The notes: generated by a model not told the origin, from the letters alone. Numbered from the stretch's first letter, positions 1 through 44,585 are shown. The stretch: DNA of 64,000 nt from Rhodosorus marinus CCMP1338 (GCA_029953675.1 JAMWBK010000011.1:1-64000), one strand, 5' to 3'. Numbers and translations are program-made.

Positions 1-278
1 AAGTTTCTTGCTGTGGCGTATGAACGCTGCTTTGATGTTGGAGGCGCGATCTTCGCCGCGCATAGTCTTTTTCTGCCTCGAAGTTTTTTCTTTCAGTCTC
101 CGATTCGGGAGTTGTTCCGCGAACGCCCTGACCGTCTTCAATCGTTGTTTACCCGCTTAAGTTTCCTGCTGTGGCGCATGAATGCCGCTTTGATGTTGGA
201 GGCGCGAGTACTTCGCCGCGCTTAGTCTTTTTTCTCCTCGGGTTTTTTTCAGCCTCCGATTAAACCATTCGTTCGTTC
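1..278 (+). mobile_element. Two stacked 5'-truncated 3' ends of type B CRE-like non-LTR retrotransposon
   Basis: 1-103 and 104-278 each carry the ...LMLEAR(V/D)LRRA* end and T-rich 3' UTR; the second ends in AAACCATTCGTTCGTTCG and matches 9660-9835. Confidence 0.85.
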
Positions 279-587
279 GATTAAAGAAATTCAGTCAACT
301 ACATGAACTTCCCGCGCTTTTGAGAACCATGTTCACAATACAGTTTTTGGTTTCGTGAGGGTGTATGGTGCTGGCTTTTGGTGGTTTTGAGTCGCAATTG
401 TGTTCTTCGGTGGGAGGCGCTTCTTTCTGCAGCCTTTCCCCCGCATCTTCTAGTGGTGTGGTGTGTGCTGGGGGTTGCTAGCGCCCCTTGGAGGTCGTGG
501 TGGTTTTTCTTTGGTTGCAAACGTTGGGAACAAGTTCTCTTTTTGGGGGTTTCGTGGGGAATCGGTTTTTCACACCTTCCTATCGTT

Positions 588-1882
588 ATGGTTGGGGTTT
601 CCCCACCCATTCCGGCGGACGGAGCCGTTCTCTCAGCGCGCGTGGAGCTCAGCGTGGGCGGGTTTAGTACCGCGGCCACCCTCACGGACTGCGCTGACGA
701 GTTAGCCCATGGGATCTGCTCGAAATGACGAGTCTTCTTGTGACTGCTTCCCAGGAACACCGCCTGCCCCTGCTGATCGCCTATTTGGAGCGCTTCTCCG
801 CCTCCGCGCCTGCCCCATACCCCCCGGTGCCCGTCCCCGCGGATCCGCACGGTACAGCGGGGCCTGCCTCCACCCGACCCGAGCGCTCCGCTCCGGTCAT
901 TCCTGATTCCGACTGGCCTACCCCTATTCAAGGACAGACGCCTCCTGGGCCCGCGTCGGGCCCGAATCCTGCCTCCAGTGCCCCACGTGCGACCTATTCG
1001 CAGGTCCTGCGCAGGGCTCTTCTGAACAACGCACGACGGCAATGGTGCGTATGATGCCACAACACATCCCTATTGACTCTTCTCGCCAACTATCTCCGTT
1101 CCACTTTGTTTGGATGACGAACGTGCGTCCCCAGACCCCCTCTCGTGGTCGGGGCCGCGCGCCCGTCCACTACCGCGATTTTCGCGACACCATGGCTTCC
1201 TCCCTTGGGGTCGCCCCATCTGAATTCCTATATGTGGACTTCACGGGCCCTCATGCCTGTTTTCTTGTTACTGACTCGGCTTACCAGTTCCTTCAATCGC
1301 TTGTAACCACCCCCGCGCCCCAGCGCTCTGCTCTGGCCAACATGATACTGACTCGTCCTCATGTCTCTTTGTTTGTCGAGTTCGATCGTTTTGACGCCGG
1401 CTGGGTTCCTCCGTCGGCCTTGCAAAACCTGGATGCCTCGCAGGCTTCGGTTGTCGCGCTACACACTCATGCGGCGCGGCTCTCGCGCATACAGGCGAGC
1501 CTCTTCGCGCGTTTTCCTCCTCGCGGGGTCCTCCGCACCGCGTTAGAGGCCTTCCTCTCCACTGAGGCCACCCTGCTGGAAGCCCACCCTGCGTTTGACC
1601 TTCTGCCGCTGACTCTTGAGCACCCCTTCCTCCCCTCGCCCTGTCTCCGAGGCTCGTGACACCGACATGGCAGAAGCACCATCGGCCTCTCCGAATCCGC
1701 TGGCTCTGGACACCCTCAGTCAAGACTCCGCTGCTGAAAACCCTGTGTCTACTTTCTTCAGGTCTTTTAGTTCCTTCGTGCGCCCCCCACGTAAGCGTCG
1801 TGCGGCTCCTGAGCCTCCCTCCGAGGCACCTCCTCCGGATATTCGATCTGCCTTCCCGACTGAGGGGAGGCCCGATGCCTGA
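588..1882 (+). pseudogene. Retroelement ORF1, frameshifted in this copy (pieces 588-728, 725-1054, 1051-1659, 1616-1882)
   Basis: MVGVSP start and successive blocks align with 44168-42546 (-) and 63130-63794 (+), e.g. HYRDFRDTMASSLG vs SMLDFRHTFAESLG; ends in a basic RKRR/KRxR motif. Confidence 0.7.
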
Positions 1883-4460
1883 GTCTTCCTCCTCCGCGTG
1901 CGTGTCGTCCCGGTTACCCCTGTTTACCAGTGACCGCTCAGCCTGGCATGAGCGTGTTCTCTCGTGGTTTTCGCACCTTGTCGCCTCCTACCCGGACGGT
2001 TCCCTTCCCCTTTGTCGTCAGAGCACGGCCGTACGGCTCCTTCGTCGACTTCATAAGCCCCTAGGATTGGTGTTGGATTTTCTCTGGCAGCAGGTCGCCG
2101 CGACCCCTCACTGCTCTCTTCGCTGGGAACTCTTGTTCTTTTTTCCCCGCCTCGTGCTCACCTCCTCTACCGTCCCCCTCAACCCACATCCTCGCCGGGT
2201 CCACCCTCGCCGAAAACTGCAAATGTTCCTTTCCGGCGACTTTGAGGACCTCGAACGTCTTTATTTCGCTTCTCTCTCTTCCTTTTCTCCTAGTGCTCCC
2301 TCAGCTTTTAGGTCTTCTCGACAGAATCGGGCGCGTCACGCGGTGGCAGGCGGTGATCTGCGGCGGGCAGCCGGGATCCTCCAGCAGCGGCAACCTGTGG
2401 TTCCATACTCCGATGATCTTTCTTCACCGCTCCGTTTGCTCTTTCCCTCGGAAGGCTCCCCTTGGGACTCCTCGTTTGAATCAGTGTTGGAAGAGTACCG
2501 CGCCGCGCCACATCCCAGTGCGCGGTTAGTGGTCAATCTGGAGGCGGTGCGTGAGTTGGTTCATGATGCTCCGAAGGGCCGTTCCCCAGGGCCCTCGGGG
2601 CTGCGGGTGGAATATCTCCGTTTCTTAAGTGATGAAGGTTTGAAGGCGTTGGCGTGGGTGGTCGAAGCGCTTGTGAATGGTGATCCCCTGTGTGAGTGTG
2701 CGTGGTTCTTGGTCGGTCGTTCGCAGTTGTGTCTGCTTTCGAAGCCCGGCCACACGGCCTCGAGCCCTGCTATTCGCCCTATTGGCCTGGTTGAGGTGGT
2801 CCGCAAATTGGCGGCGCGATGGTTAGTGAAAATCCTGGTTCCCGAATCCCGCCGTTTCTTTGGGCACGTGCAGTTAGGCGTGGGCTATGGTGGTGGCTGT
2901 GAGTTGTTGTCTGTTTTACTCCGTTCGGAAATGGCGTACTCCCCAGATTCTGGGCTCCTCTCTGTAGATTTTACCAATGCGTTCAACCGCGTCTCTCGTC
3001 CGGCTCTCATGCACGTGGTGCGCGAAGTCTTCCCTGTAGGCTTTCCCTTTGTTAGTAGACTTTATTCTCCGCTTGGTCGTGGGGCTACCTATGACACCCT
3101 TGGCGCTTCCTCACACACGTTTGCGGCGCGCACAGGGGTACAACAGGGTGATCCCTTGTCCCCTTTCCTACATGCCTGTGGACTACAACTCGTCTTGCTT
3201 TGTCTTCGCTCCGAATTCCCGCAGGTTCGTACGGTTGCATACCACGACGACGTGCGCCTCCTGGGGCCCCCTGATACTCTAGCGCTCGCTTATGATCGTC
3301 TCCGCTCCTTGGCTTCGCGGGTTGACCTGGAGGTTAATCATCACAAATCGTTCTACTGGGGAGGTGTAGCTGCACAAGAGCAGCAGGTACCTGCGTCGTT
3401 CCAGGATATTTGGAGACCGGATAGTTTTGTCCACTTAGGCATCCCCTACGGGTCGCCGTCCTTCGTTGAAGGCGAGTTGCTGCAGCTCCTCGGTAAGCAC
3501 AGACAGCTGGTTGCAGAGCTTCGACGGCTACCTCCGGGCTTTCTCCAGTGCTCGTTGCTGCTGTTTCGGTATTGTTGCAGTCAGCGGTTAACCTAATGGC
3601 TTCGCTCACTTCCAACTCATTGGGACCGGTGTTTGGCCACTCGTGCGGATGCTGAAAGTTTCCGTGACCTGGGGTATTTTCTCGATGAAGAGCTGAGCGC
3701 TCTGCCGCGACCCACCTCTGATGTTGTGCGCGCCCAGGTAGGCCTCCCATTGCGATTGGGGGGACTGGGCCTCTGCAATCGTGTTGTGGTCCAACCTGCA
3801 GCCGCAGTAGGGGCCTGGGGAACCGCACTTCCCACTTTGAGCAGCTTGGGTATCTCGAAGTTCCGCAATTTGATGGCGAGCCTCTCGCGGGGTGTCTTGC
3901 TTCCCAGCGTACCGGAAAGCGCCCAAGACTTGTTTCTGGAGCTCCAAACCGCCCTGAATTCCTGTACTAGTCTCCCCGAAACCGTTCAACCCCGTCTTCC
4001 TGACTGGCGAGCTGTATTTGACCGCTCTCGAGGCTCCGCCCCGGGGATTCGTCCTGCGCCTGAACCTGTTCTAGTGGAGATTGACCCAGTGGTTGCCGCA
4101 GAAGAAGAAGTCCCAGTTGATCCTCCTGATGATTCCCAGCGCGCTGGGAGCCGAGCTCAAGCACGCACGGATGCGCTGCAAAATATCCTTTCTTGGGACT
4201 TGCACCGTGCTGCATATGGCCGACTCCTCGCGCAGATGGTCTCATCTTCCCGCGCTCGCGCCCGCCTACGTAGTCTTGGAGGGGTTATTAGCTCTCAGTG
4301 GCTCATGACCGTACCAGCCTTTCCGCCACTCACACTGTCGGATTTCGAAGTGCGTACTTCACTGCGCTTATACCTCGGCTTACATCAGCCCCCTTGGCCG
4401 TACGAGATGGGTCCGTCGTGCCCTCTCTGCTCTCAGACTGAAGACAACGCAGATTTTGGC
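1875..4460 (+). pseudogene. ORF2 reverse transcriptase, thumb and start of CCHC finger; nonsense codon at 3594-3596
   Basis: RT motifs SPGPSG, IRPIG, QLGVGYGGGCE, SVDFTNAFN, GVQQGDPLSP, AYHDD, HLGIPYG, LPLRLGGLG. TAA falls in QRLT*WLRSLP where the paralog at 39754-41304 reads PRLNYWLRSLP. Confidence 0.92.
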
Positions 4461-4639
4461 CGGCCTGTCGTTTGTTCGGTTCGAGCTTGTCAGAGAGGTT
4501 TTGGTTTCTCTCTATATATGTTCGTCTGGACGTTGTTGGGGAAGACGGATTGGGGGAGGGTGTGGTGGAGGTGAGTGTTGCAGAAGGACTGGTTCCTTGC
4601 GAGGTTGGGTGGAGTCTGTTAGCGATATCAAGTGTCGAT

Positions 4640-4850
4640 ATGTATCGCTGGGTGTTCTTGTGGGCTTTACTGGCTGTTTTAGCCTGTGGAGAGAATGAAC
4701 TGCGTGTGCTTCCTGCTTCCGAGCAGGGACCTGAGCGTGATGTCGTGGAGGTTGATGTGGCGAGTCGGGTTGGATGTATGGGGGTGATTATGATATCGAA
4801 CAAGAGGGAGGTTGTGAAGCCAGGACTCAACGCACCCCCACGAGAGAGAG
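4640..4850 (+). pseudogene. 5' fragment of a secreted-protein gene, truncated
   Basis: MYRWVFLWALLAVLACG resembles the signal peptides of other genes here; the frame runs into a minus-strand element leader near 4850. Confidence 0.4.
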
Positions 4851-4975
4851 AGACAGTTGCAGTCGCAACGGCACACCCCGGAAAAGCGGGGGGAAGGACT
4901 ACCAGAGGAAGCGCTTCCCACAAACAAACACGCTCGCGACCGAAAAAGATTCAAAACCCCACTTCTTCGCCCCCC
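4850..4975 (-). mobile_element. 5' leader fragment of CRE-like element
   Basis: GTGGGAAGCGCTTCCTCTGGTAGTCCTTCCCCCCGC resembles leaders at 405-445, 17160-17205, 24185-24240 and 44100-44150. Confidence 0.6.
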
Positions 4976-4984
4976 AGCCCATAC

Positions 4985-5950
4985 CCTCATGCTTTATTAG
5001 CATAGCCTGAAGCGCTACGCAAGGCGTGAAAAGGGACTAAGAACTAGGTAGGGAAGCGTGCAAACCCAGGCGCCTATGGCGCGCCTGAGCAAGCATGCTG
5101 CTCGAGTAGCGCCACAGAGAGACGCTTAAACGACGCAAAAGTTCCAAATATTCAACAGGATGCTCAGCAAAACATTTCCGCAGCCACTCCAAACCCGACT
5201 TTTCCACGTGGCCAAAGCTTTCCACAATGAAAGGCTGGAACCGGTGTGAGCGACCCTCTGCACAAGGCAGGCTGGCCATACTCTCAGCGTACCGTCGTTC
5301 CTTCACTCGGCGAAGGGCAGAAGCGGCTGCCCCGGCGGCCGGCGGCAGCAGTGAGATGGGCGCTGGCAACAGGGCATGTAATCGCGAGGTCCACATATGT
5401 TGAGCGTCGGGCGGCAGCGTCGGAGACAAGAAGATCTGCGATACAGCGGGGCGGCGCTGTTTCCGAGACCGATCTGGGCAGCTCCGATTCCACCTCCACC
5501 GTGTGCCCTACCCGAGTCAAGCTTTCGCTAAGAATGTATTTGAAGCGAGTGTGACGCCTCGTACGAAGACCTCTCAACAATCCGCATGAGCCTAAGAAGT
5601 GGTAACCACAAGCATCTATCCGACTCTCACATCCCTGACAGAAAGACGGCCGATTAGAGTTCCACGGAGCTTGTGGCAAACCCAGGTAGATCCGTGCGGC
5701 AGAGCGGAACTGGAAGGCATCGGGACGGTGACCCAGTGACGATGGCAGCGTGGTTAACCACAAGTGCGATAGATGGCCTCCCATGCCGCGGACGCGAGCA
5801 GCGGTGGTAGGCGGTGTGAGGGGAGAGTTGAGCAAGATTGCGTGAGCCGCACTGTGTTGGCCCCACTGGCTTTATTGGACTTTACTAGCATGGTCTCATC
5901 GCCCCACTGGCTTTATTAGCATAGCCTGAAGCTTCTACTGGGTGCTCAAA
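4985..5950 (-). mobile_element. Type A CRE-like element 3' part (CCHC finger and RLE endonuclease) plus extra tails
   Basis: FCQGC...HFLGSC, RTRRH, ADLLV...YVDLAI, FQPFIVESFG, ends LGLHASLPSS*; tail GCTTTATTAGCATAGCCTGAAG at 4991 and 5909. Confidence 0.9.
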
Positions 5951-6239
5951 ACTGATCCTGCACGCCTTGGTGTATGATCCGTCCTGCGAAAAGTACCCCT
6001 TCACGAGCTCTACCGAAACAGAGTACGACTTACATTTGTGACCCGTTGCTGCTCCTGCCGATCTGTTGGCGTCTGGTGGAGAAGTCGTCAGTGTCAGAGT
6101 GGCCATTGCCTTCCCCACAGTAGAAGCGCACATGATCGGTTCCGATAACGAGGAAATCAACAGAATATTAAAATGTTTTACTAGCACATAGTGCCCCGTG
6201 TAGTACACCCGTACGTTGTCCTAGTTCCCTTTTTTTTCC

Positions 6240-6625
6240 ACTCGCCTTGTTTTGTTTTCGTTTTTCTCAGTCTCAAACGCATTCATTCAGTTCCGGTTGA
6301 AGGAGAGAATCGGAAAAATAGTCGATAAGAAAATCTTGGAGTTTGAGGCTTCACCAAAAAAATTCCCATCTGGTCATCGAATGTTTTGGGTTTATGGATT
6401 CCGTTTCCTGGCTTTCGGGAGTGTTGTCCAACTGTTTGACCTGAACGTCTCCCCTCGTTGTGTTCACCTGTCTAAATTTCTTGGGGAACCAGTGCTTCCC
6501 TCGTCCTTAATTTCCTTTTTTTTGCCCCTCGCCTCGTCTTGTCTTCATTTTTCTCAGTCTCAAACGCATTCATTCAGTTCCGATTAAAGGACAGAATTGG
6601 AAAAATAGCGATAAGAAAATCTTGC
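6240..6625 (+). repeat. Direct repeat of about 95 bp (6240-6340 and 6525-6625) containing a type B-like 3' tail plus shared flank
   Basis: TTTTCTCAGTCTCAAACGCATTCATTCAGTTCCG...GATAAGAAAATCTTG present twice with few differences. Confidence 0.8.
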
Positions 6626-6691
6626 AGTGGCGGCTTCAGCAAAACAATTCCCATTTTTAAGCGCATTTCAATCTGCCAACGGTTTTTTTCT

Positions 6692-6810
6692 GGTTGTGCC
6701 AAGTGGGTCGTTTTTTTTCGCCGTGGACGAGCCAGAAGTGGTTAAACCCGCGAAAACATGGAGGTTTAGAGGGGTAAACAGCGAAGAACCCGACCCCCAC
6801 TTGACACAAC
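6692..6810. mobile_element. MITE-like element, about 120 bp
   Basis: Terminal inverted repeats GTTGTGCCAAGTGGG / CCCACTTGACACAAC; related copy in opposite orientation at 14516-14666. Confidence 0.6.
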
Positions 6811-7416
6811 TCTTAGTTTTTTCGTTTGTTTTCTCTTCAGCCGCTCCAAACAAAAAGAGGAAAAAGGCGTTGGGAGGGGAGACTTTTCGTGCAGAAGATT
6901 GATGGTCCTCGCGGAGGGCGCGGGGGTGGGTGGGGGAAGCCGTTCTGGGAACAGGCTATGGATGCAACGGGAAACAATGCGAAACTTGAAAAAAAAGGCA
7001 AAAAGTACATCAATATTCTCGTACTGAGTCGGAGGGGGATGGCGAGGGGGCGTGGGGAATCCGCACACTGATTACATGAATGGTAGTAAAACCCCCATGA
7101 ATGGTGCGTCACGTTTGTCTTGCTGAGGCGCGCCATCGGCGCTTGGGTTTGCTTGCTATCGTTCGTAGCAGTGGTTTTGCCAATCCAGAGCTTGGCACTA
7201 CTCAGATTGTAATGTCATTGGACAAGACACAAACCCGGTTGTCACAATGGTGGTTTTACAATTGACTTAATGCTGTGTACAGGCTTCAGTACGAAGATAC
7301 GCGGAAGGGTATATACATACCACTTGAGATGCTGTTTGAGGGGAGGGCAGACGCGTGGGAGAGCAGCTGCGGGTGGACAATCTTTAGATTTTGGGAGTGA
7401 AATTGAGAGATTATTC

Positions 7417-8841
7417 ATGAAGTACGGGTTGGTAGTAATCCTGCTTGCCGGGATCTTTGGCTTGACGGTTGCCGACGTTGGCACATGCGCAAACTTTGTT
7501 AATCCTCTCTTTTCATCGTACACAATTTCTTCCTCGTGCTTTCCACTGCAAGTTGAAGGTGAAACGGTGGGAAGCGTAAGCAATAAGGATGTCGTGAAGA
7601 CGCAGGGACCGAACAAGGGAGAGACGTGTACCAGGTTCACTTTTGTCGTGCGCGAGGGACTTGGGATTAGACGAGCCAAACTCGGGCTATGGTTGGGAGG
7701 GATTCCTCGCAGTAATGCTCGGTTCACTCGTAAGAGAAAGTTTCTAGATAGTGAGCCGACCACGGTGAGAGTAGACGCATGCCTGGACGATATCAAGACA
7801 GACGGTGACTGCTGCAGTGAAGAACGTCTCATACCGGCGCTCGTGGTTGAAGCGAAGGTTCGAATGGAGGACGGCAAAGTGCGTATTGCTGGACTGAGCT
7901 TTCCAATAGCGGGGGACACAACCTGTTCCACCGCTCAAGGTTCCAGTTCATGCACTTCTATTGCCGATGCGAATGGGGATGGATTCGTTGCATGCACGCT
8001 CCAAGCTTCGTGCAGTTCGATCGGCGAGCAACCGGAATTTGGCGGCATCAACCGTATCAACCGTACGGGAGGAGTAGTTGAATTTGTGCTTTCACCCGGC
8101 TTCAGCGAATCTAACCCGCCAGATTTTGCGCTCGAGCTTACCCTCTACGAGAAGCAACCCGAGCCATTGCCGTCAGAGGGCATCGCTCCGGAAGCGCCTA
8201 CGGTGAGCCACCTGTCAGAGGCCGTCCCTGCGCAATCGAGTACGGTGATCCGCCGCCCTGTAGTTTTTATAAGAAACTTCGACTCTTTCAGCGTTGCGGT
8301 ATTTAACGTGCCAGAGTTGTATACCTTGAATACACCTGTACTCGCTTTTGCTGTCGAGTTGACAGATTCTGAATTTCCCTCGAGGTATTCAGTGAGGGTC
8401 GAGGACGTCGAGGACAAACGACGGCTACTACAATTTATCTCTTTCGCCAGCACCCCGGTTTTTGCGAATTCTCCTTCTGGCCCAGTGCCAGTAGGACAGA
8501 TTGCAACGAATTCCCTATTTGGGCCGCTTCTGGACTACCCACTCGTAGGGCGCATTGGCAGCGTTATTTGCGGGTATTGCTCGAGTAGAAATCCGCCACC
8601 GAGAGGGGAATGGGAAATCTTGCAACCCGACCAACCCGGGGGTCTCAACGAAGGCCAATTCGAAGCTGAATTGGCACGCCAACCCGGCCGTTGTATCTTT
8701 GACGGCCAAATAGGGAGTTTCGGATCGGTGTGTGGTCTACCTGGAGAAGAAGGGGTAAGGCGAAAGTTTCGCTCGTTCTTATATCAAGCGCTTCCCTTGC
8801 TAATCGAGACTTTTACAAAAATGCTCGTCTTGCCTGCTTAG
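7417..8841 (+). CDS. Secreted 474-aa protein with unnamed Cys-containing domain
   Basis: Intact ORF; signal peptide MKYGLVVILLAGIFGLTVA at second Met; motif RRAKLGLWLGG...C..DI...DCC shared with 12842-13969 and 45320-46795. Confidence 0.8.
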   Translation: MKYGLVVILLAGIFGLTVADVGTCANFVNPLFSSYTISSSCFPLQVEGETVGSVSNKDVVKTQGPNKGETCTRFTFVVREGLGIRRAKLGLWLGGIPRSNARFTRKRKFLDSEPTTVRVDACLDDIKTDGDCCSEERLIPALVVEAKVRMEDGKVRIAGLSFPIAGDTTCSTAQGSSSCTSIADANGDGFVACTLQASCSSIGEQPEFGGINRINRTGGVVEFVLSPGFSESNPPDFALELTLYEKQPEPLPSEGIAPEAPTVSHLSEAVPAQSSTVIRRPVVFIRNFDSFSVAVFNVPELYTLNTPVLAFAVELTDSEFPSRYSVRVEDVEDKRRLLQFISFASTPVFANSPSGPVPVGQIATNSLFGPLLDYPLVGRIGSVICGYCSSRNPPPRGEWEILQPDQPGGLNEGQFEAELARQPGRCIFDGQIGSFGSVCGLPGEEGVRRKFRSFLYQALPLLIETFTKMLVLPA

Positions 8842-9222
8842 ATTCTCCAATTCTTAGGGATCGTCCAAGGACAGGTGTTGTGTAGCTGCCCCCAACCAAC
8901 CCCTGCTGTCCCCCGCCCTTAAAGTAGGTGGGCAGCAGCGGGGAGGGAAAGCCGGTCCCATCTTATCGAAAGATTATGAAATGCTGCCTTGATTGCTTTC
9001 CAATTGCGTATCAGCAATAGAGGCGATTGGTTGCCGCTGGTGTTTTGAGTAGGTCTGGATAAAAACTTGTACCGCGTCGCATCTGAAATTTAGGTCAGTG
9101 GGTTGGCCAGCACCAGCGTTCGCTGTTAGTTCGGCAAGAACTCAAAAGTGGATTGGACTAGACTAGCACTTTTGGGTAATGTGATCCGGCAACTACCTTG
9201 ATGTGTCAACGCAGATTTTGGC

Positions 9223-9780
9223 GCCCACCTGCTCGCTAGTTGCCCAGCAGTGAAAGGTGCTCGAACCCGCCGCCATACACGGATCTTGAACCTGTTATAC
9301 CGGGAACTTCGGCCTATAGTCCGGCAAGCCGGTCTGGAAATCGAACGTGAGAAACCTTTACCCGTCGCGGACTTTCAAAATGATGAACGCCGTGTAGCCG
9401 ACCTGGTGATCACCTGTGACGACAGCCGCCGTACCACATACGTTGATCTTGCTGTTCCTAACCCTCAAGCTAGTCGTTATCTCCCGGCTGTGGGGGAGCG
9501 CCGTGGATCTGCCGCCGCCAGCATGAGACGCCGCAAAGAGATCAAATACGCGGGGGCTTTGTCTTCCCCTGGTGTTCGTGCTTCGGCACTAGCACATCGC
9601 TTGGTACCCCTGATCATTGAGTGCTTTGGGTTCATGGACTCTGTTGGTTCTCGCTGGCTTCGGGAGTTGTTCCGCGAACGCCCTGACCGTCTTCAATCGT
9701 TGTTTACCCGCTTAAGTTTCCTGCTGTGGCGCATGAATGCCGCTTTGATGTTGGAGGCGCGAGTACTTCGCCGCGCTTAG
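9223..9780 (+). pseudogene. C-terminal zinc finger and PD-(D/E)xK restriction-like endonuclease of the split element
   Basis: HLLASC, RTRRH, RRVADLV...YVDLAVPNP, KEIKY, LVPLIIECFG; nearly identical to 35105-35635. Confidence 0.9.
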
Positions 9781-9984
9781 TCTTTTTTTACCCTCGGGGT
9801 TTTTTTTTTCAGCCTCCGATTAAACCATTCGTTTCTTTGAGAACCGCTGAATATCTTATCTATTCTGAACTGGCCTTTCGAGTGGTTTGGATTAGTGAAT
9901 TCTGGCTAATCCGAGAGTGAAAGAAAAATAAGCCCGCGGGGAAAGAAAGGAAGCCTGACCGTCTGTCCTCGTGTTTGACTCGTT

Positions 9985-10100
9985 TCTTGCTATGGCGTAT
10001 GATCGCTGCTTTGATGTTGGAAGCGCGCGATCTTCCCTGCGCTTAGTCTTGGTTTTCCCCTCGGGATTTTTCCCTTTCAGTATCCGAAGAGACAAATTCA
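9985..10100 (+). mobile_element. Diverged type B-like 3' end
   Basis: GCTGCTTTGATGTTGGAAGCGCGCGATCTT...CTTAGTC...AAATTCATTCA. Confidence 0.7.
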
Positions 10101-11894
10101 TTCAATATATCCTGTTCACTGTTTTTTAAAAGAACGAAGCCAGTTTATTGGTTTTGCTTCGGTATAACGACGGAATGGGTGAAGGCCTACCGGTGTGAGA
10201 ACTTCAGGCCATACTTCCCAAGGCCAAGGATATTTAAATCCTCTTCTGGGAGGTATTTTCTGCGATTGGGTATTTACTTTCAACCTGGATAAACGCAGCT
10301 GCACCAAGGGAACTGTCGCGAGATTGCGGGAACAAGCAGACATGGAGATCTAGAATTGGAACGCTGGAAAGGGAATACAACTAGCTAGGAAGGATGAAGA
10401 CCTTGTACGCGACGGGGTTCCCTCGCGGTTGGTTTCTGGCTTGCAATTGTAACGGTCGAGTCCGGGGATTGCGCCGCGAACATCCTCAGTTTCAAAAGCA
10501 GGATTAGAGTTTTGACCACTGGTGGAAACCAACCGCCGGAGAGTAATATCCAATATGTTGCAGAGATGTACACTGGAACAGGTGTGAATACGAATGTGTA
10601 CCAAGCTTCTCCACGTGTAGAGGCAAAAAACTACGCCCCACTTGTGAGGTCATTGACGAGTGTACGATACTTAAAGTCTGGGCCGACTGCAAACGAAGGA
10701 AACGTTCCCAATCGGAAAAACCGAAGTTTCCGATCATCTTAGACGCGGAGGATATCGATCCAAGGATAACCCAGTCTTCGATATTCCCGGTTAACGAGAT
10801 GCCGATTCTTAACTACTTGTCTCAGGACTTCATCTGCATGGTCGGAGCATCTCAGAGGATTCCGCCATGGTACGGAGAGGAACCTCCAGGATTTCCATGA
10901 AGCGCAGTATACCGGTGGACCAATGCCCAGAGTGAACGCCTAAGGGATCCAACGGGATAACTCAGCGCCCCAATTTTGGTTTAGGGGAGCGCGACGGGAT
11001 AAAAATCACAGAGGCAGTTTCTAAATAGAAATCGATAGGATGAGGAAGCGATTTAAAACGCCGAGGATACCGAGGCCCCCAGAGTGGGGGCTGTGGAGTG
11101 GGGGAAAGAAATGTCCTCAACGATCTGCCAATAAGAAACCTCCCTCCCTCCACCTCCCCCTCCCTCCCCTTTGTCTTGCTTGTGCAGGGTTGCCTTGTCT
11201 GTATCTAAGAAAAAATCACCTTCAGTAAAATCCCAAGTTTTTACAGCGAGCTCCGCGCAGAGCACATGCAGGGGGACACTCAGCAGGTCCTAATTGGCTC
11301 CTGATCCGCAATTCTCCGGGCTTACTAGGTACTCGAACTCGGAGGAGTTTCCCGAACCTCCTCTTAACCTGCCAAGCACTGCGCAGCAGCTAGATTACTG
11401 CCGTACAGGAAACCTACGACCAACACGGATCCTGAACGAGGTGAGGCGTTCGCCCTATCGTCGTCCCGGAGCCCTGAGGAAGGTGGGGACACACAGTGGA
11501 TATACAGACCGAATCCGCGAGCAACTGGTCGTGCCGCTCATACAACAAGGCATAGAGTCAGCGGTGGATGCGAACGCTCACTCCATGCGATATAGGCCCA
11601 TCTCTCGTGCCACCTGCAGCGGTTGTCTTACGGCTCGACCCGGAGAATGCTCTCAAGCCACCGCCGCGAACCACTGGCCACCATCTCCCGAGATGCTGGA
11701 AGCGGTGCGCCTGTTTGGGCTACGTAAATGACATTTAAGACTCCCCTACGTTCTTTGGCTGTCCGTGCTACTCACAAACCATGTCACACCGATACCAATT
11801 GCATGTCACATCGGCTGTAGAACAAACTGATCTGCGTGGACACTGGTCTTAAGGTGCCCCTATCCATGGCGCCCGTTTTCTGGGTGCTTAAAAA

Positions 11895-12150
11895 CCCCGG
11901 TCTAACGCATAGTAGCCATCCATGACGACGTTGGCCGGGTGACGAGGGCAGAGTGGTTCCAGCCTTTCATTAAGGAAATTTCTTATCATCTTGAAAACTC
12001 AAGCGTGGAGTGGCTGCGGAAATGAGTTACAGATCATCCTGCTGAGTATTTGGTACTCCTACGCCGATTGAGCGTCGCTGTTTGCCGAGATTCTAGCAAC
12101 ATGCTCGCGGAGACGCACCACCGTAGCACGCTTTTTCGCTAGTTCAGGCT
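11895..12150 (+). mobile_element. Decayed type A endonuclease and 3' fragment
   Basis: GTTCCAGCCTTTCATT...GGAGTGGCTGCGGAAATG...TTCAGGCTATATTAG matches the type A end. Confidence 0.75.
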
Positions 12151-12841
12151 ATATTAGAAGTCCACTGCATTTCTAGTTTCACCAATTTTTCTGCCTGGGC
12201 TTAGTGTTTAGAAAGTTCTCGCGTGTGGTTGAACCGCGAAAAAGATAAGTTGTTTTCCCTTGATGGAGAACGAGATATGCGCCTCGCACCGTGCAATTTC
12301 TTTGTTGGGATGGAGATACCTCTCAAGCCCTCGTCCACGCCAACTATTACGCACACGTTCAAGTATTGATTCAGACCTATGATCCCGCACGGCGTTCAAC
12401 CCCTTTTCCGTTTTCTGAGCAGCTCTCACGTGCGGCACCCGGAGGACGTTGTGCTACTCCAGGGTTGCTATCTCTGACTAAACGATGGTGCATGGCGTTA
12501 CACATGGGGTTGGTTTGATTCCTGTTGGGTATCTAACCATTTAAGTTCTGAATTTTATTCACATATGCATGACACACATTATACTGCCGTATTACGGTAA
12601 AGTTTACGACCCCTGAACCTGGGTCCGATGTTAAACCCGCGTACAAACCGCCGAAGCGGTCATGGCAGTCTGCTAGTTTCGCAAAGTTTTGTTTGCTGCT
12701 TGCGGTTATAGGTGACCCATGAACATAGAATCACGGTTCACGTAGCAGATCAGCTGTGCGATGGATTCCCCGGGCGTAGTGGGGTTGCCCGAGGAAAATA
12801 CGACGAACCCATCTCCAATCCAGGCGCTCTTTCCGAATCAG

Positions 12842-13969
12842 TTACCTCCACTTCGTGTTGACTGGGCATCCGTTGAATGGTATCACCTCCAGATCGGGAC
12901 ATTGCCCCACATCAGGATCCAAGAAATACCCATTACCGCTCTCATCCGAGGCCTCAATCGTGCTCAGGAACAGCATGTCCTCGATGGAGGTACAGTTTGG
13001 CATATCGGTCAACATGGAGGGGCAGATATCCCACTCCAAGGGGCTGTCCGGGGCTACTGAAGTTGCGATTTGGAACTCTTGGTTGTTTTCCCAGATTGTC
13101 TTCAGATCCTGGTCCGCTCCCCATAGGCCCAAGTACATGCCGGTTATGCTCTGCCCCTGTTCGCCCGAGTTGAATTTGATTACGAGGTGGAAGCAGCGCT
13201 CGCCGTTCACAGATGAAGTGCTGTAAGTCGCGGTTGCAACATTGGTGCCTGTAAATCTATTAAGCAAACTGAAGGTAGAGATGCAGTTTGTTTTCTTTCC
13301 GCAAGTGAACGTTGGCTCAAGCCCGGTCGCCTCAATGTCCTTCTCGCAGTTGTAGAAGGGAGAAGGAGTCGGCGACGGCGACGGGGTGCCGTCGACCCAT
13401 ATAACGCCAATTGGGCACTGAGTTATCCCGTCGGGTCCCTTAGGCGTCGATGCTGGGCATTGACTACCGCTAGGTTGCTTCGTGGAGATCCTGAGGTTCG
13501 TCTCCGTATCTCCAACGAATCCCCTGAACGCCCCAACCATGCAGATGGAGTCTTGAGAAAGGCAGTTGGGAATCGGCATAGCTGTAACCGGAATCTCGAA
13601 GACTAGGTTATCCTGATCGATATCATCCCCGTCCAAGGCGATCTGAAACTTGCTTTTTCCACTCGGAACGCTTCCTTCCTTGCAGTCGGGCCAGACTCCA
13701 AGTCTCACTCTCGTCATATTCACAAGTTGGGCGTGGTTTTCCACCTCCACCTCGAAACTTGGTATCCCGTTTGTAATCAAACCTGTTCTGGTGTTCATCG
13801 TTGCAATGTAATTGACCCTACCCGGCGGACCACCAGTGGTCAAAAAATTAGTCCTCCTTTGAAAGTAAGGATATTCACCCTTCGGGTCGCAATCCCCGGA
13901 CTCGGCAGCTGCAATTGCAGCCAAGAAACCAGCAGCGAGAAGCATCGTCGTTGTGTGCCAGGTCTTCAT
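12842..13969 (-). CDS. Secreted 375-aa protein with two copies of the unnamed domain joined by a PSPSPTPSP linker
   Basis: Signal peptide MKTWHTTTMLLAAGFLAAIAAA; MTRVRLGVWPDC..PSG..KFQ...PNC..DSICMV and second copy ITGMYLGLW...EFQ...WDICP..PNC. Confidence 0.85.
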   Translation of the reverse strand: MKTWHTTTMLLAAGFLAAIAAAESGDCDPKGEYPYFQRRTNFLTTGGPPGRVNYIATMNTRTGLITNGIPSFEVEVENHAQLVNMTRVRLGVWPDCKEGSVPSGKSKFQIALDGDDIDQDNLVFEIPVTAMPIPNCLSQDSICMVGAFRGFVGDTETNLRISTKQPSGSQCPASTPKGPDGITQCPIGVIWVDGTPSPSPTPSPFYNCEKDIEATGLEPTFTCGKKTNCISTFSLLNRFTGTNVATATYSTSSVNGERCFHLVIKFNSGEQGQSITGMYLGLWGADQDLKTIWENNQEFQIATSVAPDSPLEWDICPSMLTDMPNCTSIEDMLFLSTIEASDESGNGYFLDPDVGQCPDLEVIPFNGCPVNTKWR

Positions 13970-14127
13970 CCTTGCTAGCTAGTGGTTTTCCCTTTCCAGA
14001 CCTACTAATTCTAGATCCCCTTATCTGCTTGTGCCGAATTCTCCCCGTCACCTCCCGATTATGCGGCTGCGTTTATCCGGCTTAAGTAAATACCGAATCG
14101 CACAAAACACCTCCAGAAGATTTAAAG

Positions 14128-14270
14128 ATCCTCGGCCTTGGGAAGTCAACGAGTTTTTTGGGAAGTGCGGCCCTGTTCTGACACATGTCTGCCTTCATTA
14201 TCCTCGGCCTTGGGAAGTCAACGAGTTTTTTGGGAAGTGCGGCCCTGTTATGACACATGTCTGCCTTCAC
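14128..14270 (+). repeat. 72-bp tandem duplication inside an unclassified dispersed repeat (homologous to 10140-10290 on minus strand)
   Basis: ATCCTCGGCCTTGGGAAGTCAACG... starts at 14128 and 14200. Confidence 0.85.
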
Positions 14271-14515
14271 CAATTCCGTCGCCGTCACCCAAGAAAACCA
14301 ATAGACGGGTTTTTGCCGCAAAAACTGTAAACAGGATATGTTCGAACCAATGGATCGATGATCGGATAGTTTAATTGGACACCCAAGACTGACGATTTCC
14401 AGGGAATTCATGCTCGCCGAGGTCACCGTCAAGTTTGTCTACCTCATTGATTCGATAGTCCGCTTTCTGGCATAATCCGGGTTGTGATTTTGGAGGTGGG
14501 CGGTCTTGGCAGTAA

Positions 14516-14666
14516 GGTTGTGCCAAGTGGGTGGGGTTTTGCCAGGTGGGTTGGGTTCTTCGCTGTTTACAACCCACCCAACCCCTTAAACCCCTTGTTT
14601 TCGCACGTTTAACCACTTCCGGGTCGCGTAAACAGTGAAAAACCAGACCAACTGGCACCTACAACC
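14516..14666. mobile_element. MITE-like element, second copy
   Basis: GGTTGTGCCAAGTGGG left end, imperfect inverted right end; core GAAGTGGTTAAAC..GCGAAAACA..GGTTTA shared with 6692-6810. Confidence 0.55.
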
Positions 14667-14765
14667 CTATTGACAGCGTGTAGTCTTTTTTTCCCCTCCG
14701 TGTTTTTTTTTCAATCCCGGATTGCACAAATTCATTCTTTCCCTAACAAACAGCAAACTGGGTAC

Positions 14766-15190
14766 GTTCGAAACCAGCCGTCCACTGACACCTTGTTCAG
14801 GTACCAGAAACAAATTCATTCAGATACGGTAGGACCACCACCCGTTCGAAACCAGCCGTCCACTGACACCTTGTTCAGGTGCTTCGGCACTAGCACATCG
14901 CTTGGTACCCCTGATCATTGAGTGCTTTGGGTTCATGGACTCTGTTGGTTCTCGCTGGCTTCGGGAGTTGTTCCGCGAACGCCCTGACCGTCTTCAATCG
15001 TTGTTTACCCGCTTAAGTTTCCTGCTGTGGCGCATGAATGCCGCTTTGATGTTGGAGGCGCGAGTACTTCGCCGCGCTTAGTCTTTTTCCCCTCGGGGTT
15101 TTTTTTCAGCCTCCGATTAAACCATTCGTTCGTTCGTTCGTTCAGGTACCAGAAACAAATTCATTCAGATACGGTAGGACCACCACCCGT
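14766..15190 (+). repeat. Two 78-bp tandem units, the second interrupted by a type B insertion
   Basis: Units start at 14766 and 14844; the second resumes at 15148. Confidence 0.9.
14881..15139 (+). mobile_element. 5'-truncated type B copy with 8-bp TSD
   Basis: GTTCAGGT at 14873-14880 and 15140-15147; matches 9580-9835; tail (TTCG)4. Confidence 0.92.
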
Positions 15191-15429
15191 CTGACAAACA
15201 ATTAAACGATGATTTTATTTTATTTATTGGATAAACAAAAGGAGATCAAATGGAGTAAGCAAACTTTCTATTTTTATACTTGGATTCTATAAATATCCAC
15301 CAGTAATAAGTATTCTGCTATCTTAACGGATTATGAACGATTGACCTGAGCACGAAATCTCTTCTGTTTGCGTAAAATTTGAATATATATCTTTGTTAAG
15401 TATACCGAAGCGGGCGGAATCCTGAATTG

Positions 15430-16900
15430 GTTGGTGGTTCTACTGGGCTTATTAGCATAGCCTGAAGCGATACGCAAGGCGTGAAATGGAACTAAGAACT
15501 AGGGAGGGAAGCGTGCAAACCCAGGCGCCGATGGCGCGCCTAAGTGGTTTTACTGGCTTTCCAAACCTGAAGCGCTGCGCAAGGCGTGAAAGGGAGAAGG
15601 GACTAGGGGGAAAAGCGTGCAACGTAGGCGGCGATTGTGCGCCACGGCGAACATGCTGCGAGATTATCGCCTGAGAGCGACACCCAAACGGCGTGGGAGT
15701 CCCAGATATTCAACTAGTCAGTAAACATTTCAGCAGCCACTCCAAGCTGAACCTTTCCAGATGCCCAAAACTTTCCACAATGAAAGGCTAGAACCTTTGA
15801 GAACGGTTCTCGGCCCGGGGGAGACTGGCCATGCTCTCAGCATACCGCCATTCCTGCAGCCGGCGAAGTACGGAAGCTGCTGCCCACCGAGCGGAGAGCG
15901 GCAGAGGCGGGATAAGTACTTGACACAGGGTCTGTGACAGCGAGGTCCACATATGCTGAGCGTCTGCCGACGGGATCCGATACCAGGTGGTTTTACGAAC
16001 CAGGAGATTTGCGATGCGGGGGGTGGCAGAGGCTGATCGAGGCAGTTCCGATTCAAACTCAACCGTGTAACCATGTGGCCAGCCCTGGTCAAATGTTCGC
16101 TCAGGATGTACTTCAGACGGGTGTCGCGTTTCGTTCAATGACCGTTCAGCATTCCACAAGAGGCCACAGCTTGGTAGCCACAACCGTCAATACGAGTCTC
16201 ACAGCCTTGGCAGAAGGAAAGGCGATTAGAGTGCCAAGGGTCCTGTGGCAAACCCAGATAGATTCTTGCGGCAGACCGGGGCTGGAAGGTGTCCAGACGT
16301 TGCGCCGGTGACGGGGTGAGAGTGTTTAACCACAGGTGAGATAGACGAACTCTCAAGCGGCGAAGACAAGCCACAGTTGTGGGCGGTATGAGTTGTTCCG
16401 CGAACGCCCTGACCGTCTCCAATCGTTGTTTACCCGCTTAAGTTTCCTGCTGTGGCGCATGAATGCCGCTTTGATGTTGGAGGCGCGAGTACTTTGCCGC
16501 GCTTAGTCTTTTTTTCCCCTCGGGGTTTTTTTCAGCCTCCGATTAAACCATTCATTCATGAGCGGAGAGTTGAGCGAGATTGCGTGAGCTGTACAGTGTT
16601 GACCCGAGGTGAGGCTAGGCTGAATCACATCAGTGCGTGCGCTGCAAATTCTGCTCATACCCGGGTAACCTGCCGCGGGCGACCTCAAGACCATACGAGC
16701 ACTGAAAGTGGTAACCACAACCGTCAATATGACTTTCACAGCCTTGGCAGAAGCAATGGCGACTAGAGCGCGAAGGGCCTGCGGCAAACCGAGGTAGGTC
16801 CTTGCCGCAGTCCGGAACTCGAAGGCGTCCAGACGTTGGCCCTTTGACGAGGGCTGAATGGTTAACCACAAGGAGGGAGGGGGGAAGATAGGTCAATTGG
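15430..16900 (-). mobile_element. Stack of decayed type A fragments with a plus-strand type B copy at about 16393-16557
   Basis: A tails at about 15440 and 15545; endonuclease and zinc-finger remnants; B copy flanked by ATGAG at 16388-16392 and 16558-16562. Confidence 0.8.
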
Positions 16901-16920
16901 GAGAGTAGGGATTGATTGCA

Positions 16921-17608
16921 GACTGAGGATAGAATTTTTTACGCCGCGTAGCGCTGAAGGCTGTTTTAGTTAACCAACCAATCACCAGCACGGCTAAACA
17001 GTCTGCGACGAAAAGCAAGCAGACGTAGACGACCTATTCCTCAGATGTTTTCGAAAATTCCATATCGACAAGGCACTGCTTATACGGAGGCGTCGAGGTT
17101 TTCGGTTTTTGAGTTCTCCAGGTTCGGGTTTTGAGTCGCTTTCGGTCACGATTGTGTTCTTCCGTGGGAGGCGCTTCCTTTGGTTGCCCTTCCCCCCGCT
17201 GTTTCGCGTTGTGCAATTGAAGTTGAAAGCGGCCTTAGCAGTTCAACTCTGGAGTCTTATTCTCGAGAGATTAACCCAATGAGTATGAAGCAGGGAGATT
17301 TGATTCCAGAGTTGAACTCCTAATGCCGCTTTCAACTTTGATGGCGGGTCCTATAGTCAGGTAAATATAGCCAACTTTAAGCAGGATGGAAAGTTTTGTA
17401 AAGGGTTAGATCGTTCCTGATCACCGTTCAGAAGACGTGAACCTTGTCGATATGGAATATCCGAAAACATCTGAGGAACAGGTCGTCTACGTCTGATTGC
17501 TTTCCGTCGAAGACTATTTAGCCGTGCTGATGATTGGTTGGTTAACTTTCACAGCATTCAGCGCCACGCAGGGCGTAAAGAGTGATGTAAAAAGTTTTTT
17601 CCTCAGTC
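16921..17608. repeat. Inverted repeat with arms of about 155-165 bp (16921-17073 and 17442-17608)
   Basis: ...CCTCAGATGTTTTCGAAAATTCCATATCGACAAGG mirrored by CCTTGTCGATATGGAATATCCGAAAACATCTGAGG...; each arm starts with a diverged type A 3' hairpin. Confidence 0.88.
17220..17338. repeat. Hairpin with 37-bp stem (3 mismatches) and about 45-nt loop
   Basis: AAGTTGAAAGCGGCCTTAGCAGTTCAACTCTGGAGTC vs GATTCCAGAGTTGAACTCCTAATGCCGCTTTCAACTT. Confidence 0.9.
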
Positions 17609-17619
17609 CGCTGGAATGC

Positions 17620-17925
17620 CGTGGATTTGCCGCTGCCCGTATGAGACGTCGCAAATAGGCAAAACATGCGGGGGCTTTGCTTCCGTGCTTCAGCTCAAGC
17701 TCATCGCCTGGTAGTTCTGGTCATTTTGAGTTCTTCGGCTTTATGAATTTCGTTGGTTCTCGTTGGCTTCGGGAGATGGGCGCGAAGGCCCTGACCGTTT
17801 CTCCCCTTTTTGGCCCGTTTTCAGGTTCCCGCAGTGGCGTGTTAACGCTGCAATGATGTTGGAGGGGCACGGTCTTCGCCGCACGTTCAGCTTTTTTTCT
17901 TTCAGTCTCCAATTAAACGAATTCA
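17620..17925 (+). mobile_element. Decayed type B-like endonuclease and 3' end
   Basis: GTTGGTTCTCGTTGGCTTCGGGAG...CCCTGACCGT...ATGATGTTGGAGG...CAGTCTCCAATTAAAC. Confidence 0.8.
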
Positions 17926-18159
17926 CGCAATCACATCCTCTGGAATTAGTTGTTTTTATTGGGAATGATGCTACGGGTGTGATTAGTGCATCGGCAGTTC
18001 TAGAGGCAGTATTTCCCCCCGAGGAGAAACACTGAGGGGATCCATTCTAAATACAAGTCCTCCCTTAGGTGTTTCCTAAAGGTTTGTTTGCAAATTTGAC
18101 TGCGCCAACAACAATATATCTATTTCGTTGGGAGGTAGGCGATGTCGTAGCTGTCGATT

Positions 18160-44230: not shown

Positions 44231-44297
44231 ACGCTTAATCATTGTTGGCAACCGAACAAGTCGTTTGAAAGAGGACATTGTAGATGTGCAACTTCCT

Positions 44298-44585
44298 AGC
44301 GGTTTTGCTGGCTTTATTAGCATAGCCGACAGCGCTACGCAAACCGTTAAAAGGAACTAAGAACTAGGTAGGGAAGCGTGCAAACTCAGGCGCCGATGGC
44401 GCGCCTCGGCAGGCATGCTGCTCGAATATCGCCACAGAGAGACACTTAAGCGCCGCAAAAGTTCCAAGTATTCAACAGGATGCTCAGTGAAACATTTCCG
44501 CAACCACTCCAAACCCGACTTCTCCACGTGACCAAAGCTTTCCACAATGAAAGGCTGGAACCGGTTTTTTGGTTTTGCTAACATG
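44298..44585 (-). mobile_element. Short type A 3' fragments
   Basis: FQPFIVESFGHVEKSGLEWLRKCF...HASLPSS* plus tail. Confidence 0.88.

Follow-up and report, generated by a model that had tools for sequence, protein, structure and literature searches.

A complete gene for a predicted secreted protein sits within a retrotransposon copy at the start of a contig of the red alga Rhodosorus marinus, and our leading explanation, to which we give a probability of about 50%, is that a chromosomal DNA fragment was inserted at a staggered break in a copy of the element that was already resident. The window analysed is the first 64 kb (from base 1) of contig JAMWBK010000011.1. The 10-bp sequence TTTGAGAACC occurs exactly twice in this window, at 319-328 and 9836-9845, and brackets element B (329-9835) as a target-site duplication (TSD). 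A 16-bp sequence, CAACGCAGATTTTGGC, is found at 4445-4460, where it is part of B, and again at 9207-9222, on either side of a 4,746-bp insert; the only other occurrence in the window is on the minus strand at 35663-35678, where chance would predict none. The nested duplications described in a first-pass annotation of this DNA are thus confirmed: B, with its 10-bp TSD, is split by an insert that has a 16-bp duplication of its own.

The 5' part of B (329-4460, plus strand), defined by domain searches and copy comparison, comprises a 5' UTR, ORF1 remnants and ORF2 with its reverse transcriptase. The ORF1 remnants (725-1882) are frame-broken by indels relative to the 495-aa ORF1 of L004, another B copy. 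The reverse transcriptase part of ORF2 (1656-3593) is followed by an in-frame TAA (3594-3596), a nonsense change at a codon that is TAT in L004, after which ORF2 resumes (3597-4460) and ends inside a CCHC zinc finger. Past the insert, the 3' part (9223-9835, plus strand) contains the rest of the finger, R2-like putative endonuclease-region coding (to 9780) and a tail ending in CCGATTAAACCATTCGTTTC. The element had been called complete; it is full-length but not intact, and with its nonsense change and broken ORF1 this copy is dead.

B encodes a LINE-type reverse transcriptase (Pfam RVT_1, E 3.2e-11) that, among PDB sequences, most closely matches R2 proteins and L1 ORF2p (E ~1e-9). Rejoining the two halves restores the CCHC finger (CPLC...H...C), which together with the next 25 residues aligns to the R2 protein 9nl2_A at 944-983 (E 4.6e-4), bearing out the earlier view that the insert splits zinc-finger codons. 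Pfam searches returned no match for the C-terminal part and no Exo_endo_phos match in ORF2 that would indicate an N-terminal APE-type endonuclease. Judged by domain order, B appears to be an R2-group-like non-LTR retrotransposon with a putative C-terminal endonuclease region. The R2 group, whose members have a C-terminal restriction-like endonuclease, comprises CRE, R2, NeSL, R4 and Hero, and the founding members of CRE insert site-specifically into spliced-leader genes. Such site specificity is not seen in B, for which 11 copies lie at differing sequences that share only a CTY| context and a preference for the tails of other elements. A protein search for further copies with the rejoined ORF2 C-terminus found nothing, the element's ORFs being seemingly absent from the protein collection.

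Uninterrupted versions of the split site are present in all five other B copies that span it, each of which has the 16-mer once and lacks the insert. In a 5'-truncated sibling within the window (35053-35712, minus strand, 98% identical), B 4411-4460 continues directly into 9207-9833, as had been reported. The remaining four lie elsewhere in the genome: two full-length copies, L004 (6009-1275) and L009 (19007-14273), which are 98.8-98.9% identical, and two others, L008 (9152-8373) and L010 (21001-20062). The 16-mer is thus not a tandem duplication of ordinary B elements. TSDs in the B family measure 3-11 bp (about nine copies), 5'-truncated copies begin at B positions 3805-4574, and CTY lies directly left of the TSD in 7/7 integration sites with readable TSDs. 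Copies that are 98-99% identical give the genome the look of one with young, active R2-type elements. TSD lengths could not be read for a second family, A, because its tail is a variable tandem repeat. A mosaic A copy at 39.7-44.2 kb, considered as another example of an internal patch, turned out to be an uninformative pile of fragments from different subfamilies.

The gene within the insert, NDN08_007006 (7417-8922, plus strand), consists of exon 1 (7417-8754), an 87-nt GT..AG intron (8755-8841) and exon 2 (8842-8922). The first-pass annotation had described an intact 474-aa secreted-protein gene in the sense orientation of the element. The gene is indeed complete and so oriented, but the 474-aa frame is exon 1 plus read-through of the conserved intron, whose splicing is confirmed by a transcript (L005) and by the C-termini of paralogs; the product has 472 aa and ends at 8922. 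It begins with a hydrophobic signal-like segment and has no Pfam match. An AlphaFold model of low confidence (pLDDT 54.5) places an N-terminal helix before beta strands, and a fold search with this model gave nothing significant (best E 3e-3, TM 0.2). Homology suggests that NDN08_007006 belongs to a Rhodosorus-specific family of predicted secreted proteins, the members of which all sit among these elements.

The remainder of the insert (4461-9206, plus strand) is a chromosomal segment typical of the loci of this gene family. Unique sequence at its left end (4461-4827) has no protein homolog and no DNA match in the ~190 kb of genome sampled. Next come the initial 130-150 bp of a 5' UTR of A/B type (4828-4961, minus strand), arranged tail-to-head after a 5'-truncated 3' fragment of family A that includes C-terminal endonuclease-region coding and tail (4991-5865, minus strand), and short additional A-tail pieces (5860-5932). 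Two old tandem B-like tail fragments (6218-6660, plus strand) are common to the paralog locus L002 (8648-9340) and to L006, and are thus ancestral to the upstream region of the gene family. In all, 2.9 kb upstream of the gene is kept, with relics of A in antisense and of B-like elements in sense, collinear with L002. The 3' flank or UTR of the gene (8923-9206, plus strand) completes the insert, and homology to L002 ends within 2 nt of its right edge. What had been termed captured host sequence therefore carries a host gene but is not purely host, as relics of the same element families lie in it too. The supposed second signal-peptide fragment, an ORF at 4472-5005, has no homolog, nor has the ORF at 4472-4831.

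The insert has the appearance of genomic DNA and not of a processed transcript, its intron and the 2.9 kb upstream of the gene being still present. At its own ends it has no TIR, LTR or element tail, in agreement with the first description, and the 16-mer is the only terminal repeat. Neither a tRNA gene nor a hidden small RNA was found there (Rfam gave only one weak MIR529 match, far below threshold), neither junction contains poly(A) or filler, and no microhomology is visible on the B side of either. Insertion at a later staggered break is favored by this clean 16-bp duplication unaccompanied by filler, other terminal repeat or tail, by the single site in 5/5 other B copies, by the retained intron and upstream DNA with relics in both orientations, and by the frequency of nested insertion in this region. 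It also has a parallel in the nuclear mitochondrial segments (NUMTs) that are unusually abundant in R. marinus and insert by end-joining (PMC10250338).

We propose the following course. A full-length B would first have integrated at TTTGAGAACC through ordinary target-primed reverse transcription, and the resident DNA copy would later have been broken inside the zinc-finger codons, leaving 16-nt staggered ends. A 4.7-kb chromosomal DNA fragment, a unit of the secreted-protein family comprising the upstream region strewn with elements, the gene with its intron, and the 3' flank, would then have been joined into the break, and fill-in of the overhangs would have produced the 16-bp duplication. 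The source of the insert would accordingly be DNA, and the event would postdate the integration of B. Against this reading, the 16-bp duplication exceeds every B-family TSD measured (3-11 bp, about nine copies), and fragments captured by end-joining are usually flanked by a very small duplication or by none.

The right edge of the insert offers a possible clue to the origin of the breaks. This edge (...AACTACCTT GATGTGT) lies at the position of the gene's 3' flank that a B-like element entered in L002 (...AACTACCTT GAGGTGACA), the closest paralog, and its sequence is similar to the CTY| context nicked at B integration sites. Its placement within 2 nt of the L002 junction, together with the CTY found at 7/7 sites, favors the staggered-break reading, and from this one likeness we infer that element endonucleases may have made the breaks. 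For the recipient break, B's own endonuclease is not the obvious author, because the 16-mer site (GAAGA|CAACGC...TGGC|GCCC) misfits CTY| on both strands. A gene-to-B junction inherited in common with L002 was rejected, as the B-like piece of L002 starts at about B 9575 after ~12 nt of filler and not at 9207. Two independent B copies flanking host DNA, followed by deletion, were likewise discarded, since that scenario leaves both the outer TSD and the 16-bp overlap unexplained.

An edge at a possible transcript end suits an RNA template equally, which counts against the break-and-insertion reading and brings in the other mechanism that the first-pass annotation had offered beside it, template switching. 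The B reverse transcriptase would have made two switches within one retrotransposition event, an account that we consider rather unlikely. Having reverse-transcribed the terminal 629 nt of B RNA, the enzyme would have moved to the 3' end of a second template, extended over 4,746 nt of it and come back to B RNA 16 nt behind its departure point to finish the element. That template might have been a read-through transcript of the gene region in unspliced form, or the 3' end of a DNA strand cut by an endonuclease in the 3' flank of the gene; we regard this course and this choice of templates with the same reserve. The shared orientation of gene and B, the single TSD around the whole and an insert edge that coincides with the end of paralog homology, resembling a transcript end or cleavage site, all fit such a course. 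So do the irregular joints of the B family, which include 10-12 variable nt at 5' junctions and an internally deleted copy (L003) joined across 25-nt imperfect homology, and in Magnaporthe a LINE reverse transcriptase is documented to jump templates twice (PMC2104539). However, an intron and 2.9 kb of sequence upstream of the gene, antisense relics included, set the insert apart from a normal mRNA or other processed RNA, and its junctions have neither poly(A) nor filler. To our knowledge, precise recopying of 16 nt is not a signature of template jumping, whereas a 16-nt duplication is what a staggered break is expected to leave. Template switching would require a read-through RNA that was not spliced (or a DNA acceptor), a 16-nt recopying that has no explanation and, as a copying mechanism that should leave its donor in place, the loss of that donor, which does not appear among annotated proteins. 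That B, in a single integration event, passed to a cut DNA 3' end (or unspliced transcript) at the gene's 3' flank, copied 4.7 kb and went back to its own RNA, yielding a LINE with an entire host gene inside it, promoter and intron included, is in our judgment quite unlikely; were it so, the composite, with the two ends of the element preserved, might in principle be moved in trans, providing a dispersal route for the secreted-protein family.

Retroposition in trans would place the RNA later. After B had integrated, an element endonuclease and reverse transcriptase would have nicked it and reverse-transcribed a long unspliced host RNA, with the 16 bp as TSD, much as processed pseudogenes form. 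A TSD-flanked sense insertion with its right edge at a plausible RNA 3' end is compatible with this in a genome that has young, active-looking R2-type elements. The retained intron and promoter region speak against it, as do a duplication outside the B TSD range and a donor missing from the annotated proteins. R2-group enzymes, moreover, normally recognise their own 3' UTR, yet neither insert end has an element tail, and we consider this route very unlikely.

In the search for a donor, exact look-up of the 474-aa and 523-aa ORFs found neither on record, and the 90% protein cluster of NDN08_007006 holds only the contig 11 copy and one on contig 15. Beyond the latter, the closest annotated protein is a paralog 63% identical to NDN08_007006. 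The element-free second locus of the gene that the first-pass annotation had suggested seeking is therefore missing from the annotated proteome, which favors insertion of a DNA fragment at a break and suggests relocation by cut-and-paste, though the missing donor locus is itself a point against this reading. On balance, the intron, the upstream DNA, the clean duplication and the lack of a second annotated gene copy tilt the choice between the two mechanisms first offered toward the staggered break.

A templated insertion of FoSTeS/MMBIR type, in which synthesis at a stalled or broken fork in B switched to another locus for 4.7 kb and came back 16 bp behind, would fit the genomic look of the insert and a small duplication at the return point. 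It is nonetheless a copy mechanism for which no donor is seen among annotated proteins, neither junction has visible microhomology on the B side, and the match of the insert's right edge to the L002 integration site is left unexplained; we hold it to be highly improbable.

Contig 15 matches the window over 430-18983 at 99.1%, with both junctions and both 16-mers identical and one substitution in the 4,746-bp insert. It shares at least 9 kb of downstream flank, which excludes it as a transposed copy, and it represents either redundant assembly of this region or a segmental duplicate. No copy with these internal junctions and a different outer TSD, which would have indicated movement of the composite, turned up in the ~190 kb sampled of the 31-Mb genome. 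Only 329 bp separate B from the beginning of its Nanopore contig, in a repeat-rich contig end, and contig 15 diverges from the window contig left of B position 434, both of which might point to an assembly artefact. The recurrence of the same junctions in two separately assembled contigs, and a perfect 16-bp direct duplication flanking unique DNA, which is not a product of misjoins or chimeric reads, make an artefact extremely improbable.

Among known systems, chimeric LINE retrocopies formed by template switching, such as U6/L1 and the tripartite MGL-LINE pseudogenes of Magnaporthe, similarly join sense host sequence to a 5'-truncated LINE 3' part within one outer TSD, but have the order host-LINE3' or host-host-LINE3' and involve processed or small RNAs (PMC13174262, PMC2104539). 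The R. marinus order is LINE5'-host-LINE3', with a host part that still includes the intron and promoter region and is flanked by a separate 16-bp duplication. In LINE 3' or 5' transduction, host flanking sequence is also linked to a LINE but sits outside the element ends, whereas the R. marinus insert lies in mid-ORF2. Break capture of the NUMT/NUPT type and templated sequence insertions likewise introduce a non-mobile fragment without terminal features at blunt-looking junctions, though usually with no duplication or one of a few bp; here the source is nuclear, 4.7 kb long and apparently relocated instead of copied, and the duplication is 16 bp.

Pack-MULEs and Helitron captures (transduplication), to which a LINE counterpart had been proposed here, resemble this locus in holding host DNA between both ends of a mobile element. 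They are DNA transposons that carry gene fragments, are present in numerous transposed copies and do not displace the parental gene. The proposed likeness is not supported. The R. marinus case is a single locus with a dead element, a complete gene, no parental copy among annotated proteins and no sign of movement: 0/5 other B copies carry the insert, and contig 15 did not transpose. As far as sampled, the composite has never moved and there is no evidence that B now carries the gene around; the split B looks like a one-off insertion into a resident copy and not a new kind of mobile element. If the staggered-break reading is correct, the locus is a cleanly documented relocation of a complete gene into a red-algal retrotransposon copy, with uninterrupted B references at hand and a hint that the break on the donor side was the work of element endonucleases, and it illustrates how shuffling can affect a lineage-specific family of secreted proteins that resides in element-rich islands.

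Nesting of insertions is the rule in this region. Just upstream of the outer TSD, sequence comparison identified two B-family 3'-end fragments (1-273, plus strand), the second nested in the tail of the first: the outer one (1-105) derives from an older B subfamily (~85% identity), and the inner one (104-273) is young (96-97%).

Two nested duplications, the outer one a target-site duplication (TSD) around a copy of B, an R2-type non-LTR retrotransposon, delimit a real and cleanly bounded composite structure. The outer 10-bp TSD TTTGAGAACC occurs in the window only at 319-328 and 9836-9845, whereas the 16-mer CAACGCAGATTTTGGC occurs at 4445-4460 and 9207-9222, on either side of the insert (4461-9206), plus once in a 5'-truncated sibling (35663-35678). 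Self-comparison of the window revealed that 4411-4460 runs directly into 9207-9833 in this sibling (35053-35712, 98% identity). Four additional site-spanning B copies came from loci fetched for paralogs of the insert's gene: two full-length (L004 6009-1275, 98.9%; L009 19007-14273, 98.8%) and two truncated (L008 9152-8373; L010 21001-20062). All four have a single, uninterrupted site and no insert. The nested duplications proposed in the first-pass annotation are thus borne out, and the 16-mer is single, not tandemly duplicated, in the sibling and the other four B copies. The same annotation reported an insert without TIR, LTR or tail at its ends, and we likewise found none, the 16-mer being the sole terminal repeat; no tRNA was found either. 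An Rfam search of the insert returned just one weak match (MIR529, E 0.07, far under threshold), which overlaps the 87-nt intron described below.

ORF2 of B encodes a LINE-type reverse transcriptase (Pfam RVT_1) that matches R2 proteins and L1 ORF2p at E about 1e-9. When rejoined, the B halves encode CPLCSQTEDNADFG/AHLLASCPAVKGARTRRH (the slash marks the split point), which aligns with residues 944-983 of the R2 protein 9nl2_A, covering the CCHC finger and the next segment (E 4.6e-4). These matches make B R2-group-like in its predicted domain order. The 11 sampled B copies are inserted into unrelated sequences, often inside the tails of other elements; readable TSDs are 3-11 bp long, with the trinucleotide CTY just to their left. 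Young copies with these features (96-99% identical) lie at 104-273, 14872-15136, 16390-16557 and 35053-35712 in the window and in L004, L008, L009 and L010, and the tails that host them are often those of other A/B elements, A being a second retroelement family. Full-length copies have about 10-12 variable nucleotides at their extreme 5' end.

The window copy was first described as a complete element, which holds for its extent (329-9835, with TSD) but not for its coding capacity: it has TAA at 3594-3596, where L004 has TAT, and its ORF1 is broken by indels, where L004 has a single 495-aa ORF. ORF2 of the L004 copy is itself broken at two other places, and Nanopore indel errors may contribute to frameshifts in B. 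In an older B copy (L003 11811-13127, minus strand, 90%), position 2510 is joined straight to 9769 (window coordinates). This joint, an internal deletion through template switch or recombination, spans a roughly 25-nt imperfect homology common to the two segments, GTGTTGGA.GAGTAC.CGCCGCGC.

We next consider the contents of the insert. Unique sequence (4461-4827), with no protein homolog and no DNA match in about 190 kb of sampled genome, is followed on the minus strand by an A/B-type 5' UTR start (4828-4961) and a 5'-truncated 3' fragment of A (4991-5865), after which come short A-tail scraps, then on the plus strand by two old B-like tails (6218-6660), the gene NDN08_007006 (7417-8922) and 284 nt of its 3' flank (8923-9206). 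Other unique stretches of the insert are 5933-6217 and 6661-7118. The stretch 6218-9208 is collinear with L002 8648-11689, where the closest paralog, NDN08_005320, lies (74-79% nucleotide identity), and the insert thus looks like an ordinary unit of the gene family's element-rich neighbourhoods. At 0.5-0.8 kb upstream of the start codon, the window (6218-6660), L002 (8648-9340) and L006 (351-597), a relative from another sequencing run, all have old B-like tail fragments in sense orientation. Such tails already belonged to the upstream region of the family before the paralogs diverged.

The 7417-8841 gene is identical (100%) to R. marinus NDN08_007006. The initial claim of an intact 474-aa gene was right in that a complete gene is present, but the 474-aa ORF results from exon 1 reading on into an intron. 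An MMETSP transcript in spliced form (L005/P0009), together with the C-termini of paralogs, shows that this 87-nt intron (8755-8841, GT..AG) is removed, and the final exon (8842-8922) codes for ILQFLGIVQGQVLCSCPQPTPAVPRP, with homology to the ends of family proteins P0002 and P0003. The actual product has 472 aa. Neither annotated model, NDN08_007006 (413 aa) or its contig 15 counterpart NDN08_005925 (526 aa, L007 10001-11847), is right in this respect, and several paralog models (P0006-P0008) likewise extend through the intron. The intron is conserved across the family and still present in the insert; between window 8755-8841 and L002 (about 11287-11373) it is 96.5% identical (84/87), with exons at about 79%.

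This secreted-protein family, with about 10 members in R. marinus and relatives in an MMETSP transcriptome and one Logan run, lives in element-rich islands. Its members share a hydrophobic N-terminus and conserved cysteines; no Pfam domain was found in the family, and a fold search with a low-confidence structure model of the gene product gave no significant match. Every sampled paralog (L002, L003, L004, L006, L008, L009) has A or B fragments about 100-450 bp from its stop codon, and young B copies, full-length or truncated, lie within 10 kb of each. Contig 1 holds a cluster of five family members.

The strain CCMP1338 genome (GCA_029953675.1), an Oxford Nanopore assembly, spans 31 Mb in 13 large and 4 small contigs; repeats make up 15%, and NUMTs are unusually abundant (PMC10250338). 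Because the window starts at base 1 of JAMWBK010000011.1 (contig 11), the B copy and its insert lie 329 bp from a contig end, which is non-telomeric. A second member of the gene's 90% protein cluster, NDN08_005925, is encoded on the 41-kb contig JAMWBK010000015.1 (contig 15). This locus (L007) is 99.1% identical to window 430-18983, with both junctions the same, the TAA in common and one substitution in the 4,746-bp insert; its downstream flank matches for at least 9 kb. The identical junctions and flank rule out a retrotransposed copy, and contig 15 represents the same structure assembled redundantly or in an alternative form, or else a very recent segmental duplication of it. Differences between the contigs fall mostly in repeats and a noisy 10-12 kb stretch; window 10000-12000 holds 34 of the 57 substitutions and most indels, and may either vary genuinely or be a repeat that assembles poorly. 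The contigs share an 18.5-kb structure but part ways to the left of B position 434, where contig 15 (L007 1-3340) carries element C, a third retroelement, head-to-head with B in opposite orientation (ORF1 3307->1724, RT 987->4, minus strand), whereas contig 11 (window 1-433) continues through the B 5' end and the TSD until the contig stops. C is probably a nested insertion into the B 5' UTR, and the left-side mismatch reflects either a polymorphic insertion or a duplicate, or else the misjoining of one of the contigs. That the composite itself is an assembly artefact seems very improbable: contig 15 provides a second assembled consensus with both junctions, though the left outer TSD is seen in contig 11 only.

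As to origin, we favor, at a probability of roughly one half, later capture of a gene-bearing chromosomal DNA fragment at a staggered break in a resident B copy. The precise duplication without visible filler, and the frequency of nested insertion in the region, argue for insertion into a resident DNA copy, while the retained intron, the promoter region and upstream relics in both orientations point to DNA rather than processed RNA as the source. The latter features count against a double template switch within a single retrotransposition event, which we regard as doubtful. L1 and Magnaporthe LINE template-switch chimeras (PMC13174262, PMC2104539) resemble the B composite in orientation and in their single outer TSD, but are host-LINE3' structures from processed RNAs, whereas the B insert keeps its intron. 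Retroposition in trans of an unspliced RNA is a still less likely source of the intron-bearing insert, and replicative template switching is comparably improbable.

The right edge of the insert can be read in two ways. Homology with L002 ends within 2 nt of this edge, and at the matching position L002 has the 5' junction of a B-like element truncated at its 5' end, with about 12 nt of filler before B-like sequence that starts near position 9575. The two flanks share the sequence AACTACCTT/GA(T/G)GTG..., resembling the CTY context seen where B integrates. This can mean that the donor fragment owes its end to cutting by a B-type endonuclease, which fits DNA capture, or that the edge is the end of a transcript or functional unit where a reverse transcriptase could land, which fits template switching. 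For the recipient break, B's own enzyme is disfavored, since 16 bp exceeds every measured B TSD and the 16-mer site lacks CTY.

Most simply, the structure reflects a single event in which a DNA segment with the gene was relocated into an R2-type element that is now dead. Relocation rather than copying is suggested by the annotated proteome, in which no protein more than 63% identical to the gene product was found besides the contig 15 copy; it is also plausible that the donor was lost when the many element fragments flanking it recombined. NUMT-like break capture suits the insert's content, but such capture normally proceeds without a 16-bp duplication. Pack-MULE and Helitron captures are multi-copy and carry gene fragments while the parent gene stays in place. 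The suggestion of a LINE counterpart of Pack-MULEs is not supported, as nothing points to mobility of the composite.

Elsewhere in the window, 39686-44565 (minus strand) is an accumulation of pieces from different A subfamilies, comprising a young 5'-truncated copy (41261-39686, 97%), a divergent 3' fragment (41770-41361) and 2.2 kb from the 5' end of a divergent copy (44180-42004). In the A tail there is an AATAAA-like motif as well as the variable tandem repeat (GTAAAGTCCA)n.
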